Positions 5,021-11,114 of a DNA stretch of 64,000 nt are shown piece after piece. Made by a program: the position numbers and the translations under genes. Source of the DNA: Oikopleura dioica (Eukaryota; Animalia; Chordata); NCBI GenBank assembly GCA_907165135.1, contig OU015567.1:14818001-14882000 (forward strand), given 5' to 3'. Positions within the stretch are counted from its first letter, which is position 1. Each line of letters opens with the position of its first letter. The notes under the pieces are model-generated. The model was not told where the DNA came from. It saw nothing but the letters and a program-made list of their open reading frames with translations, and searched no databases.

Positions 5021-7150
5021 ATGGGAGATTTCGGTCAAAATCCGATGGCAAACCAAGGATCGGGCTGGTCCGCGCCCAAAGCAATGGGAGGAGGCGGCGG
5101 TCCTCCGGTAATTTTGCTTTTTATGACTATATAACGACTTCTCTAGCCATTTATGAACGGTCCTCCTGGAGGTGGAGGCTTTGGCGGCCCTCCAGGCGGC
5201 GGAGGATTTGGCGGTCCACCAAGAGGAGGCGGCTTTGGAGGTCCTAGAGGGGGTGGCTTCGGCGGACCCCCGAGAGGAGGAGGCTTCGGGGGCGGCTTTG
5301 GAGGTCCTCCCGGTGGATTCAACGGAGGGGGCGGCTTTGGCGGCGGCGGTGGCTTCCGAGGTGGTTTTCGGGGTCGCGGCCGTGGCCGAGGAAAGCCAGC
5401 TCCAACTAATGTCGGTGAGTTACGCTTTTCCGCTTTCCCGCGGTTGATCAAATATTTAGTGAAAAAACGAAAAGGGTACAAGGGAGCGGCGCAAAAGCAA
5501 AAAGAACCCGCCAAGCCATCAAGACAGCTTTTCGTCCGCCCAATTGAAAATGGCACTAAGTAAAAACAGAAACATAGAGGAAAAGGTAGTAACGATTGTT
5601 CTAGGGTCTCGGAAGTGCGCGACTACTTCCAAGTTTTCGGAGAGCTGCGCGACGTTTACCTGCCAAAGGACTACTATACAAAAGAGATGAAAGGCGTAGC
5701 TTACGTCGAGTGAGTTTAAAAACATTCGTAACAGTACTTGTAAACAGTAACAGTGTCTTGTCAGCAACTGACCGCTAGAATGACTCACAAACGATCAAAA
5801 AATGAAAGAGTAACAGCTTTTTTCGCTCAGAATAATTCAAAGGGCCTCAATTTTGCCAACAAAAATAAGACCTCAGGATACAGACCAGAAAGTTTTCCTC
5901 CCAGACGAGAAAAAAAGCTCAGGATTGATAACACATAAACTTGAAAAATTAAGTCATTTGAGAAAGAAAAGAATGTGTGAAAGACATCATCAGAGACCTT
6001 TGAATCGGTGTGTCTTTTAATGATCACTTCTAAGACTACTTTCACTCATCCGTCTGCTTATGAGTCCGTTCCTGCGTCAAAGATTCACTTTTATTAGAAT
6101 TACTTTTCTAATTGGGACTTCCTGTTAGCTCTTAGTTGTATGCCAGTAGCAGAGCTGCTAAAAAAGATACGCCTGCATAAACAAAAGCAATCTTGTTAAA
6201 AATTTCAAGCCATGGTCATTAAAATAGCTTTCCTAAACTTTAAACCTAACCGATTCCAAAAGGTATAAGGAGCAAGAAGACGCCGAAGAAGCCCAAGCCG
6301 CCATGGACGGGTGCGAATTTAACGGCAAAAATATCTCAGTCACTTTCGCTCAGGGCGACAGAAAATGTAACTAGTAGATCATGAATCTTAATTTTAAAAA
6401 CATGAAAAATAGCGAAAGAAACGATGGCGACAGGAGTGTACGCTACTAACATGGAAATTGAAATGCTCAAAAAAGAGCTCGCCAAAGAACAGGAGAGACT
6501 ATCGAAGGCGGCAAGAGGAGAACGGATTTCTCCACCAAGGGTACGGAAATATTTTACAATCACCATGGCGCTAGCTTGATGCTTGTGTAGTTCGCCGAAT
6601 TGGACGACAATGGAGCTCCCATTGTCAAGCCAATGGTCAAAGATGATAGAGACAGAAGGAGAGGCGATCGGCGAGATCGGGACAGGCGAAGAAGAAGTCG
6701 AAGTAGAAGCCCTAGACGAGGCCTTGGCGGAGGACGCGATAGAGGACCAAGAGACGATGACGATGATTGCCCAGAGTTCAGAAAGCGTCCTGTAAGTAAT
6801 CCTCGAAAGAAACAAATCCTTACCTCTTTTAGGAATCCGATAAGGTAGATGATCATTGCCGTGCAGCAAAATTTGCTGATATCCGGCAATCAGATTAGTC
6901 TTTAGAATTTCTATTGCCTGTAAATTTTTGATATTCTGACGAGATCTTTGTTTAGGATAAAATAGATGATTGTCCAGAGTTCGCAGGTCGCCCTGGCCGA
7001 GACGATCGAAGTCGAAGCCGTCGAAGTAGCAGGGAGCCAAGAAGTAGTCGAGGTGATCGTGACGATCGACGTGACCGTGATAGGGATCGAGATAGTCGTC
7101 GTCGAGATAGAAGCCGAAGCCGAGAGAGGCGAAGATCTCGCGACAGGTGA
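5021..7150 (+). CDS. SRSF10: SR splicing factor, SRSF10/SRSF12-like: N-terminal Gly/Pro/Phe + RGG region, RRM, RS/RD tail
   Basis: Spliced RRM: LFVRPIENGTK..EVRDYFQVFGELRDVYLPKDYYTKEMKGVAYVEY..EDAEEA...ISVTFAQGDRK (FAQGDRK is an SRSF10/12 hallmark). RS/RD repeats at 6640-7150; TGA at 7148-7150. Confidence 0.78.
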
Positions 7151-7417
7151 TTTAACATTTTATATCCCCCGATCTCGAACTCTCTTCTAGACGCTGAAAT
7201 TGCATCTTGATTTGGTAAAAAGAAGGAACCGACTATTTCGACTTTCATCGCGTGATCCTCCTCTCTGCCACCTTGATCCTCAACCCTACCCAACTTATGA
7301 TCGCCGATGGAATACTTTTTCTGTCCCCACTTTTCGTTTATGTAATAACTCATTCAAAACAGCTTATTGTCAGCTCCATTTATTGTGAAACATTTATTTA
7401 TAATAAATCTATTTTCT

Positions 7418-9236
7418 TCAGTCAACATGTGCGTCGATATGATCTTTTACGATGTTCCAAATTGTACCGTCGGTAATTTTGAGCGCGACAGCTTCGATAT
7501 CAGTTGACAGAACCCGATCAGTTGTCATGAATTGTGCGCTGCTTCGTACGCAGGCGTGTACCTTCTCCAAAATTGGCGTTGATGTTAGAGGTCGACGTAG
7601 GTCAACGGCTTGACAAGCGCAAAGAAGCTCAATCGCCTTAATGAGAATAGTTTGTTTAATAATCAGATGAGGGGTGTTACCAAGATTCGCTCGACATTTT
7701 CAACGACCGTAAGGGCCTTCCGCGCTGCCCAGCCGCTCATGCTGACGTGATCTTCGTAGCCAGCACATGTAGCAATTGTGTCGACTGAAGCTGGGTGGCA
7801 GAGCGTTTTGTTTTCTGAGACAAGCGCCGAAGCTGTAACTTGGCCGATCATGAAGCCAGAATTGATGCCCCCTAAATCATTGTCAATTAAAATCGTCGAG
7901 GTAAAAAGCTGAACCTGTAGGAGTCAAGAAAGCAGGGAGCTCAGAACACGCTGGATTGAGAAGACGCTCGATACGCCGCTCGCCCATATTGCCAATTTCG
8001 TGAACGCCGATTGCCAAATAATCAAGCGCCTTTGAAATATATCCTCCGTGAAAGTTCCCGCAAGTAGTAGTCGTATTTTGGTCGACGAGAACCATCGGAT
8101 TGTCTTGTGAGCTATCCAATTCGTTTTCAATCAGCTCCGTGGCGAATTCAACGACGTCGTTGCTAATTCCGTGAACTTGGGGAATGCATCGCAGTGTGTA
8201 TGGATCCTTAATTATTCAATACTGAAGCCTTTGTTGCTTAACATTTGCGTACCTGAACACGAGTAACCGCCCAAGACTGGCCGATTTCCGACTTCTGGTG
8301 TTGGTTGTTCAACAACGATCGAATCTTCCGTGCGACTTTGATCTGCCCTTTGTGCGGCCGTGCATTGTGGATGTCCGGATCGAAGGCATCTGTAGTCCCA
8401 ACAAGGCCTTCGATCGTCATTGCAGCGACTACAGAAAAGCTTGAGTGGTTATGTAAAGACGTTATGTAAAAAGCGGTAAAATCGCTCATAAAATCATAGT
8501 TCAACAAGTGCCAGTTTTTACAACTTACCAACATCAGCTACATTTACGATCATATTGGCTCGATGGGCCGCTTCTGCGCCAAGAGCAGCTGCAAATGCAT
8601 TTCCCGAAATCATTGAAATGGCGTCTTTAGGCTTCAACTGCAAATTCTCAAGCTCATTTCGACCAAGAACCACACTTGCACTCGCTTCTTCCGAAAAACT
8701 ATCCCCGCTCCACATTTTACCTTCGCCTAGGAGCCCCAAAGTCATGTGGGATAGCTGTGCCAAGTCGTGGGCCCCGACTGAACCTCGCTCGGGAATGATG
8801 GGAAGGCAGTTTTTGTTGAGAGCGGCCAGAAGAGACTCGACTGTACTGCGACTGACACCGGAGTATCCTCCAGCAAAGTAATTGAGTCTCACTGCCATCA
8901 ACGCTCGCGTGCGCGCCGCAGAGATTGGATTTCCAGTTCCAACGCAATGCGATCGGATCAAGTTCTCGTTCAGCTCGATCAAGTTGTCCTCCGAGATGAC
9001 CACATTTCCAAGCTGAGTGCCGATCCCTGTGTTGACAGCGTACTTCGTTCTCCCTGAGCTGAGAATTTCATCTACAACAGCTCGAGACTCATCAATTCGT
9101 TTCCACGCATCTTCAGAAAGCTCAACTTTCTCGTTGAAATCCTATTCATTATAAGTTCGATTTCTAGACCTCGCCTGTTTACCTGGATTTTGAGAATGGT
9201 CTCACTATTCAGAGATTTTCCGTTTAGTTGAACCAT
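7418..9236 (-). CDS. HAL: Histidine ammonia-lyase homolog lacking the MIO-forming Ala-Ser-Gly motif
   Basis: Colinear with animal HAL: [72 protein letters not shown]. The active-site loop reads [13 protein letters not shown] instead of GTVGASGDLAPLSH. Confidence 0.9.
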
Positions 9237-9409
9237 CTTTTCATCAAATTCTCTCTATTTTTCTATTGACGTTAGTTTTCTAAGTTGTCCAAGTTGAAAT
9301 TTCCCCGCCCAGAAAAAACGGCAATAAATTTCGACTCTTCGCCACGCCTATTTCACGCGACGGGCTTTATTGATGAAAATATTTTGATTATAAAAATTAC
9401 TGTTTTAGA

Positions 9410-11114
9410 ATGGCGGAATTCGAAGGAGGAGGACCATCTCCAGTTGCAGAGACAGTGTTTACAGTTCTCCCCAGTGCCCGAAAGATATGTGGTCTTCTCG
9501 ACAGCATCTTGAATATTTACGATCCGGTTCTTGCTGGTCACTGTTCAGCGCCAGTTAGCCAACCGAAACCGCCAACTGCACCTGTAAGTCTCAGTGTTGG
9601 CAATCTCAAATTATGTTTGTTTCTAGCTCAATCCTCCTCCCATGCTTCTCAAAGATCTGGATCAATCCAACTCAATGTTGGAGCCACAAGCGATTGATGG
9701 CTTGAAGATGGGCGTCAACTGCCAGCTTAATGATCGCATCGGAGCGTCGACCAACTTTCAATACGGAAGTGGAATGCCTATGTTTGGCGTGCCTGGGCTC
9801 AAGTTTGAGGTGCAGAAGAAACTCTAAACGGATGAACATTATTAATTGTTTCTTTAGAAAACTTTGAGCTGGATGGGCAACGACTTCGTCAATTACGAAG
9901 GTCAGCTTGCCCCAAATTTGCAAGTGATGATTGGACCCTTCAACTACGGCGATCTCGTTAAGGTAATCTGATTCGCACGGGGTTAGTTCTGTAATTTTGA
10001 TGATATTTAGGGTGATCTTGGAGGCATGCAGCTGGTCAAACACGGTCGAAACTCACAACTCGTTCTTATGAACCAAGGAAACTACCAGCAGTGGAAGCTC
10101 ATGGTTCTGGCGCACAAGCAGACCATCCAAGCGGGTCCCCTCAATATGAAACGTATGAAAATTGCATGATTGAACATCTCAAACCGATTTTAGTGAACTC
10201 GACGCTGCAATCACCTGGTGGTCTCGGCGGAATCTACGGTGGTCAGTGTATGGCGGAGATTGAAGCTGCTGCTAATGTTGGCAGCTTCCGAGGAATGAAC
10301 GTCCACATTGGTGGTTCGATGGGAACTCAGATTCCTGCATACGATGGTAATAAGATGAGCTATCTCACTGGTCCTCTCACGGTAAGCTTGATGTTAACGC
10401 TCTGTACTGAAAGTATTTTAGGCCGCTGTCGGAGCTGCTGTGTCAACTTCTCCGTACATTATCTTCCAGAAGATGCCCAGCCCTTACCAACAGTGTCACG
10501 CTTTCGATACAAACGACACTATCGCTTTACGATGGAGCCGAGCGGAGAACAAGGCGAAAATCACGATTTCGTCAACTCCAGCTGGCGATGGAATGGCCAT
10601 CTCTCAGGCCATCAAGTCGCCTCATTATTTGAAGGAAGTTCCGAAGTAAGATTACTCTTCGTTGCCAAATTCTTAAAAACTCTTTCTAGGGCGGAAAGGA
10701 TGGAGTTGAATCAGTGGGCCAACTCTGAGAGACACGGCTACATGCTCAACTGTGAATATGATTATTCAGCTCATCTTGTAAGTACAGATGAATGTTCTCC
10801 TATCAATTAAAATCTCAGATGAATTACTCCGTGGCGTGGCAAACGAAGTTTTTCAACAATAAGTCCGGCATCAAGGTCGGTCTTGAAGGCAAACCCGGGG
10901 AAATTATCCCAAGCTCGATTAAAGGTAGTGGACTCGCCTAACAGACGTAAATTAAAAAATGCTTTTAGCGACGCTTTCGGACAATATGATGTTTAAATCT
11001 TCTGGCAAACCTGAAGACGCATCCCCTCTTACTTTAGATTTATCTATTGCCTACGAAGCGTCCGAAACTCCGAAGGCGCCCAAGATCGGCCTCGCTCTCA
11101 ATGTCGAGCTCTAG
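9410..11114 (+). CDS. TOM40-like / eukaryotic porin beta-barrel protein (divergent), multi-exon
   Basis: LNPPPM...LEPQAIDGLKMGVNCQLNDRIGASTNFQYG resembles the TOM40 first strands. Alternating amphipathic strands and C-terminal KIGLALNVEL* fit a porin-3 barrel. GT-AG introns join in frame. Confidence 0.55.

Follow-up and report, generated by a model that had tools for sequence, protein, structure and literature searches.

Eukaryote-type histidine ammonia-lyases (HALs; EC 4.3.1.3), such as those of Trypanosoma cruzi (6v6h) and vertebrates, carry an Ala-Ser-Gly (A-S-G) triad; the cofactor 4-methylideneimidazole-5-one (MIO) is formed by cyclisation of such a triad and dehydration of its serine, and cannot arise where Ser and Gly are lacking. 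The characterised members of the family without MIO are bacterial trimethylammonia-lyases, in which trimethylamine departs without the cofactor: the ergothionases of Treponema denticola (TdETL, 6s7j) and Burkholderia sp. HME13, the histidine betaine lyase Swoo_3913, and SO_3057 and SO_3299 of Shewanella oneidensis. Here we describe a gene in a 64,000-nucleotide (nt) stretch of the Oikopleura dioica assembly (contig OU015567.1, positions 14,818,001 to 14,882,000; hereafter the window) which, on the strength of its sequence and that of its relatives, is an intact HAL family member under strong conservation, and in which the triad is lost. MIO-less enzymes of the family were thus already known from bacteria; this would be the first found in the animal-type lineage, with its own replacement motif and an independent origin. 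The literature searched made no mention of an animal enzyme that degrades ergothioneine or histidine betaines, and held nothing on a HAL of Oikopleura or larvaceans, nor on either of these in connection with ergothioneine.

The former MIO site and the gene that carries it

The gene lies on the minus strand (9236..7418), and its codons from 8778 to 8761 (GTC GGG GCC CAC GAC TTG) read V140-G141-A142-H143-D144-L145. The original prediction had proposed that the triad Ser is here replaced by His and that one residue is missing, and both the codons and an alignment to 59 canonical HALs bear this out: His143 stands at a Ser column that is 100% conserved among those enzymes, and the glycine of another 100% conserved column (Gly144) is lost. 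With no Ser, no Gly and a loop one residue shorter, we conclude from the primary structure that MIO cannot form in this protein, in agreement with its earlier description as an animal-type HAL homologue incapable of making the cofactor; having lost the triad, it would be unable to work as an ordinary histidine-degrading enzyme. The residues on which the comparison with HAL turns are as follows.

8761..8778, minus strand: former MIO site, V-G-A-H-D-L for V-G-A-S-G-D-L; all nine lineages have H143 and lack the Gly
8755..8757, minus strand: Q147, DLAPL changed to DLAQL, the Pro being 98% conserved in canonical HALs; clade-defining
9016..9042, minus strand: tyrosine lid loop Y52-A-V-N-T-G-I-G-T60, with Tyr kept, Phe changed to Ile58 and T60 inserted; clade-defining
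8968..8970, minus strand: N76, where canonical HALs have Gln with 98% conservation; clade-defining
8947..8955, minus strand: R81-S82-H83, with the imidazole-binding His retained (by alignment)
8596..8610, minus strand: I196-S-G-N-A200 for INGTQ, the Asn of HAL N195 becoming Ser197; Ser or Asn across the clade
8039..8059, minus strand: G331-N-F-H-G-G-Y337 for GNFHGEY, with F333 retained; the second Gly of H-G-G is found in the window's lineage only, with Ala in sister lineages and Glu in distant ones
7738..7755, minus strand: E418-D-H-V-S-M, with the imidazole-binding and catalytic Glu retained (by alignment)

Roles given in the HAL literature are imidazole binding for His83 and Glu414 and carboxylate binding for Gln277, Tyr280 and Arg283, with Phe329 also named. 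In the window protein, the imidazole-holding H83 and E418 are retained, as are the carboxylate-holding Q281, R287 and N317, together with Y284 and F333; Y52 (9042-9040), H83, E418, Q281, Y284, R287 and F333 are also present in every modelled sequence of the clade that covers the position, the clade being the set of relatives with the same Ala-His (A-H) loop described below. The earlier claims that the YAVNT, RSH and EDHVSM motifs are kept (9042-9040, 8955-8947 and 7755-7738) and that the window reads ISGNA (8610-8596) and GNFHGGY (8059-8039) stand as made, with the refinement that the latter two are confined to the window's close group, distant lineages retaining INGxx and GNFHGEY. At the Asn of INGTQ, 98% conserved in canonical HALs, four of the six modelled clade sequences have Ser and the other two Asn, so that, as read from these six, the constraint on the ammonium-binding Asn is gone in the clade. 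In HAL, this residue (Asn195) is reported to hydrogen-bond the substrate ammonium and to be essential for activity (PMC11432326).

Set against eukaryote-type HAL as a whole, the clade protein has the same fold and length, and the Tyr base, His83, Gln/Tyr/Arg, Phe and Glu in common with it. It differs in the absence of A-S-G, in a loop that is one residue shorter and bears an invariant His, in a Tyr loop extended by one residue and with Ile in place of Phe, in Asn76 for Gln and Gln147 for Pro, and in the ammonium-binding Asn, which is not conserved; the N-terminal extension of about 110 amino acids (aa) in a vertebrate HAL (P0005) is absent as well. Conservation reaches 90% or more at 54 alignment columns of the 59 canonical HALs; three full-length clade members retain 42 of these, every substrate-binding and base residue among them, and the changes that define the clade (Ile58, the inserted Thr60, Asn76, His143, the Gly loss and Gln147) fall, with one exception, in the Tyr-loop and MIO-loop segments.

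The gene itself consists of six exons, and the interval 7418–9236 is exactly its coding sequence. As had been claimed, these exons join without stops: all six are in frame and give 514 aa, starting with the ATG at 9236 and closing with the TGA at 7420-7418, and introns 1 to 5 (41, 100, 46, 43 and 44 nt) have GT-AG borders in five of five cases. An AATAAA lies 20 nt past the stop codon, at 7398-7393.

9183..9236, minus strand: exon 1, M1 to Q18, with the ATG at 9236-9234; an orthologous exon 1 is present in the related loci L009 and L014
8529..9141, minus strand: exon 2, starting at D19 and ending one base into V223; contains the Tyr lid, the RSH motif, the former MIO site and ISGNA; matches Pfam PF00221 at E=1e-62
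8253..8428, minus strand: exon 3, last residue Q281; the exon 2/3 junction is backed by the spliced contig L017 of a sister lineage
7915..8206, minus strand: exon 4, starting at D282 and ending one base into G379; contains Y284, R287, N317 and F333; junction backed by L017
7681..7871, minus strand: exon 5, with E418-D-H-V-S-M; matches PF00221 and is preceded by a phase-1 intron
7418..7636, minus strand: exon 6 and the stop TGA at 7420-7418; matches PF00221

The five larger exons cover PF00221 in order, from position 13 to 465 of 466. In an exon-by-exon scan of the window protein against NCBIfam, every exon scanned had histidine ammonia-lyase (hutH models) as its best match, above Tyr/Phe lyases and mutases. 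A full-length score comes from a more distant clade member, P0414, encoded by a complete, intron-free 515-aa open reading frame on the 1,617-nt contig L016: it reaches 607 bits on TIGR01225 (hutH), for which the equivalog cut-off is 539 bits. As P0414 has no MIO triad, this cut-off is blind to the loss of the cofactor; NCBIfam holds no model for trimethylammonia-lyases.

Distribution, relationships and selection

A library-wide HMMER search with exon 2 returned 6,323 relatives. The A-S-G pattern was found in 128 of the best 150, and the A-H pattern with the same gap in one of them, a 130-aa fragment (P0027). The central Ser is missing in six of these best 150 matches. A word-based search of a larger collection, which was not steered by the loop motif and so provides unbiased evidence for clade-wide conservation, found marine metagenome fragments at 96%, 81%, 81%, 65%, 63% and 54% identity, all of which read G-A-H-D-L-A-Q-L; the aligned matches at or below 52% identity all read G-A-S-G-D-L-A-P-L or G-C-S-G-D-L. 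Gene models could be built for several loci: L009 has six exons as in the window and encodes 514 aa at 90% identity, L004 has four exons and encodes 514 aa at 68% identity, and L001 and L002 jointly yield a partial model of 380 aa at 66% identity. A scan of JGI metagenomes added L014 (91% identity), L015, L016, L017 and L018, all with the same loop; as the peptide VGAHDLAQ was one of the two patterns used, these loci were selected for the motif and count as extra members of the clade rather than as an unbiased test.

In all, nine lineages could be told apart (less than 95% mutual identity over a region of about 115 residues round the site), and all read G-[ST]-V-G-A-H-D-L-A-Q-L-[SA]-H. When written as a degenerate DNA pattern, this 13-residue A-H motif had no match in 185,579 bacterial and archaeal species (one genome each). 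Two independent DNA runs cover the site with depth, and no variant falls on it among the 40 of 91 variants that were listed. Across the sequences in hand, then, the A-H state is clade-wide and old, and the tiny introns and marine plankton sources suggest that the clade belongs to compact-genome, larvacean-like marine animals.

There is no second HAL in the 64-kb window, and to call the gene neofunctionalised, as the original prediction did, would imply a canonical paralogue. A candidate for such a paralogue in larvaceans, the canonical A-S-G HAL on contig L013 (Logan run DRR671455), was rejected: the UPF1 of the same contig matches only plant and protist proteins at 55-63% identity, placing it in a non-animal eukaryote. 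This 17-kb contig is very gene-dense, with about 16 genes and GT-AG introns of 38-43 nt.

Loss of the triad is not peculiar to the A-H clade. Outside it, P0065, from a Palpitomonas bilix transcriptome, is HAL-like (593 bits on hutH, again above the equivalog cut-off) and reads V-AAADL, without the central Ser-Gly and with a loop one residue shorter. P0089, from a JGI metagenome, reads GCS-DL; it too is HAL-like, with the triad lost and the loop shortened by one residue, and several of its substrate-binding motifs are gone, and it is not ergothionase-like. Triad loss accompanied by a one-residue deletion thus appears to be recurrent.

Phylogeny, which the original prediction had named as a check, puts the clade within eukaryote-type HAL and not with ergothionase. 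A maximum-likelihood tree of 39 sequences, from which ergothionase was absent, unites the six modelled members (100/100) on a long stem, at 0.43 changes per column, and sets them inside the eukaryote-type HAL group (100/99), which also contains sequences labelled vertebrate HAL and sponge HAL; no particular sister of the clade is picked out. The comparison with ergothionase comes from solved structures: a full-length clade member scores 532 bits against T. cruzi HAL (6v6h, E=1.4e-158), about 350 against bacterial HAL and 225 against ergothionase 6s7j, which ranks 15th in the PDB search, behind all HALs. An AlphaFold2 model of P0414, which is 67% identical to the window protein, has a mean predicted local distance difference test score (pLDDT) of 95.4 and a predicted template modelling score (pTM) of 0.94, with a dip in pLDDT to 81 in the block that holds the A-H loop. 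By Foldseek it superposes on 6v6h with a TM-score of 0.92 (root-mean-square deviation, rmsd, 1.4 A; 50% identity) and on 6s7j with a TM-score of 0.90 (rmsd 2.4 A; 28% identity). From the nesting in eukaryote-type HAL and the distance from ergothionase, we infer that the cofactor was lost within the eukaryote-type HAL lineage, independently of the bacterial MIO-less enzymes.

The ratio of non-synonymous to synonymous substitution rates (dN/dS) is 0.049 between the window and L009, 0.046 between the window and L014, and 0.063 between L009 and L014; the dS of the last pair is 0.43 and unsaturated, deeper pairs being saturated. A ratio near 1 had been named as evidence that would tell against the prediction, and the values found are 0.05-0.06. 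Polymorphism agrees: in two independent DNA runs from close relatives of the window's source, the 18 coding variants listed comprise 17 synonymous and one non-synonymous change (Q324E), whereas random single-base changes in this coding sequence would be synonymous in 24% of cases (P of at least 17 of 18 = 3e-10). Together, the dN/dS values and the 17:1 polymorphism ratio indicate that the gene is under strong, current purifying selection.

Transcription, splicing and the neighbouring genes

Evidence for expression comes from relatives. When L017 is laid against the genomic contig L014, eight blocks match at 99.5-100% identity, and the seven L014 segments between them (34-70 nt) are missing from L017. 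Four of these are the GT-AG introns 2-5 of the HAL-like gene, the remaining three lying in a convergent neighbour, which marks L017 as derived from spliced RNA; in terms of protein position, its four junctions coincide with introns 2-5 of the window gene. The second RNA-like contig is L016, whose full-length reading frame is free of introns. Thus it appears that the gene is transcribed and correctly spliced in relatives of the window's lineage. A GASGD reading in RNA had been named in the original prediction as a sign against it; the RNA-like contigs of the relatives read GAHDL.

These results bear on whether the altered loop could stem from an assembly or sequencing artefact, or mark a recent pseudogene, for which the lack of reads on the gene in two RNA runs (X21 and X22, see below) is all that speaks. 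The same loop occurs in independent assemblies of several projects and in nine lineages; the frame is intact and the splice sites canonical, dN/dS stands at 0.05-0.06 with 17 synonymous changes to one non-synonymous, and the spliced, RNA-like contigs of sister lineages carry the gene. We regard this explanation as refuted by the sequence results, its residual probability being close to nil. The original prediction had likewise held that a sequencing slip could not be the cause, and the recurrence of the Ala-His loop in independent metagenome and metatranscriptome assemblies upholds it.

Both flanking genes of the window are shared by L008 and L009, which are therefore orthologous loci. The convergent gene (5167-6990, plus strand; L017:1365-2435, minus strand) has as its product an RRM protein bearing long tails of RGG and Arg/Ser-rich sequence, and since L017 was assembled from both convergent transcripts of the sister lineage, their 3' ends must abut or overlap. 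Upstream, a divergent gene (9380-9812, plus strand) begins about 170 nt from the ATG of the HAL-like gene, a position kept in the sister lineage (L008:34-465), so that synteny extends to both sides.

Intron positions mostly differ across the clade, with five introns in the window's group, three in L004 and at least six in L001/L002 (two of them of 663 and 852 nt). The phase-1 intron at G379 is the sole position common to all genomic clade members (the window's group, L004 and L001/L002), and two further positions are common to L004 and L001. Intron 2 (8429-8528) measures 100 nt in the window versus 69-70 nt in sister lineages, and DNA run X6 holds a 13-nt deletion allele at 8448. Each DNA run contains two haplotypes, with 12-15 differences over 160-180 nt round introns. 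In L004, a 105-nt intron (7257-7361) before the G-G-L-N-S-G exon contains a perfect inverted repeat of about 20 nt (GGGAACCCGGCGTGAAAT...ATTTCACGCTGGGTTCC), which looks like a small foldback insertion resembling a miniature inverted-repeat transposable element (MITE).

Candidate reactions and their meaning

In what we consider the best explanation, the gene encodes a functional HAL-family member whose MIO was lost in the ancestor of the clade. As to its reaction, our preferred reading, put forward tentatively and at rather less than even confidence, is a MIO-independent lyase acting on a histidine derivative with a good leaving group, hercynine-like in kind. The protein would bind a histidine-shaped molecule of the imidazole-propionate type, and Tyr52 would take the beta-proton. 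With no electrophile to deal with a primary amine, the substrate would have to be a derivative whose alpha-substituent departs unaided, the likeliest being an N-alpha-methylated histidine such as hercynine (histidine betaine), which would yield urocanate and trimethylamine. A eukaryote-type HAL would thereby have arrived, on its own, at the reaction that the bacterial trimethylammonia-lyases carry out. The relaxed Asn of the clade (four Ser, two Asn) is what one would expect if the leaving group were no longer a primary ammonium.

The bacterial enzymes and the clade protein are alike in belonging to PF00221, in lacking A-S-G, and in keeping the Tyr base and the imidazole- and carboxylate-binding residues. 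They differ in setting: the clade protein is eukaryotic, comes from an intron-bearing gene and has no N-terminal signal evident by eye, whereas the Shewanella enzymes are periplasmic and encoded in flavocytochrome reductase operons. In TdETL, Lys384 binds the thiolate of ergothioneine, and in histidine betaine lyase this position is occupied by Asn (N439). Located by offset (28 residues upstream of the conserved Glu, as for N439 and E467 of Swoo_3913), the position corresponds to V390 in the window and Ile in P0414; Val or Ile is found there in ordinary HALs as well, again by an offset count and not an alignment. To a slight degree this favours a substrate type lacking the 2-thione, namely hercynine, over ergothioneine. 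A source is conceivable: histidine betaine is reported to accumulate in a marine Synechococcus (PMC3826126), so a grazer of picoplankton may take up hercynine-type compounds with its food.

Several points weigh against the lyase reading. The clade is 28% identical to ergothionase and is not its relative, so the likeness would be functional only. Where MIO would have stood there is now a bulky His, which could take up the room needed by a trimethylammonium group instead of opening it. Contact of the animal with hercynine is presupposed, as is a downstream pathway for urocanate. Finally, X21 and X22, two poly(A) RNA runs labelled with this species, gave zero reads on the gene, in a comparison that had no positive control; all that was seen in them, at about 1.5-1.8 thousand million letters per run, was five partial reads of 90-95% likeness, and no listed RNA run held more than 5% of the gene's sampled words. 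DNA divergence between the window and its sister lineages is about 25%, at which reads from another cryptic lineage of that label would miss the gene, and in view of this and of the missing control the result for X21 and X22 is not readable as silence.

Much of the same evidence could be read as that of a pseudoenzyme, which would have kept the HAL fold and a histidine or urocanate pocket without catalysis and would serve as a binding or scaffold protein, for instance as a sensor or buffer of histidine or urocanate. Loss of an essential cofactor is a classic mark of pseudoenzymes; purifying selection and the kept binding residues would suit a binding role equally well, and zero reads in X21 and X22 would suit a narrow, specialised use. 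What makes us hold this explanation to be rather unlikely, though a serious contender, is the state of the active site: Tyr52 and its lid loop are kept and have been remodelled in one fixed way in nine lineages (Ile58, Thr60), with no sign of drift, and His143 is itself invariant, which suggests a working site. Moreover, the sole characterised MIO-less members of the family are enzymes.

The invariance of His143 and Asp144 could also point to a residual ammonia-lyase for histidine or another primary amine, in which this pair would replace MIO as a general acid, as the holder of a metal (Lewis acid), or through some other backbone cross-link. The whole substrate pocket is HAL-like, including the Val or Ile at the offset position of the ergothionase Lys, and histidine catabolism would rest on this protein were it the only HAL of the genome. 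Elimination without MIO is also achieved by the aspartase/fumarase fold, a distant relative. Against this, HAL mutants that lack the Ser-derived electrophile have their activity on histidine reduced by orders of magnitude; the essential Asn195 has given way to Ser in the window protein, as it has in three of the other five sequences modelled; and no Gly is available for a cyclisation of the GFP or MIO type. We therefore think such an activity improbable. That His143-Asp144 constitutes a new catalytic device (general acid, metal site or novel cross-link of the backbone) which eliminates ammonia or another poor leaving group from histidine seems to us a long shot; if true, it would be a second solution to the chemistry that defines the enzyme family.

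One consequence holds for annotation. Clade fragments are annotated as 'histidine ammonia-lyase' at JGI, and with such naming and the hutH threshold passed, pathway reconstructions would wrongly credit HAL activity to these animals. More broadly, it appears that an animal-type HAL lost its cofactor on its own, then stayed under strong constraint over deep divergences, with a fixed set of compensating changes in its active site. Should the protein prove to be a histidine-betaine lyase, very abundant marine grazers would possess an animal pathway by which hercynine-type compounds from the diet are turned into urocanate and trimethylamine, and the protein would represent a clean case of convergent enzyme evolution. 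A pseudoenzyme, or a protein with a new mechanism, would be equally informative on the capacities of a HAL scaffold deprived of MIO.

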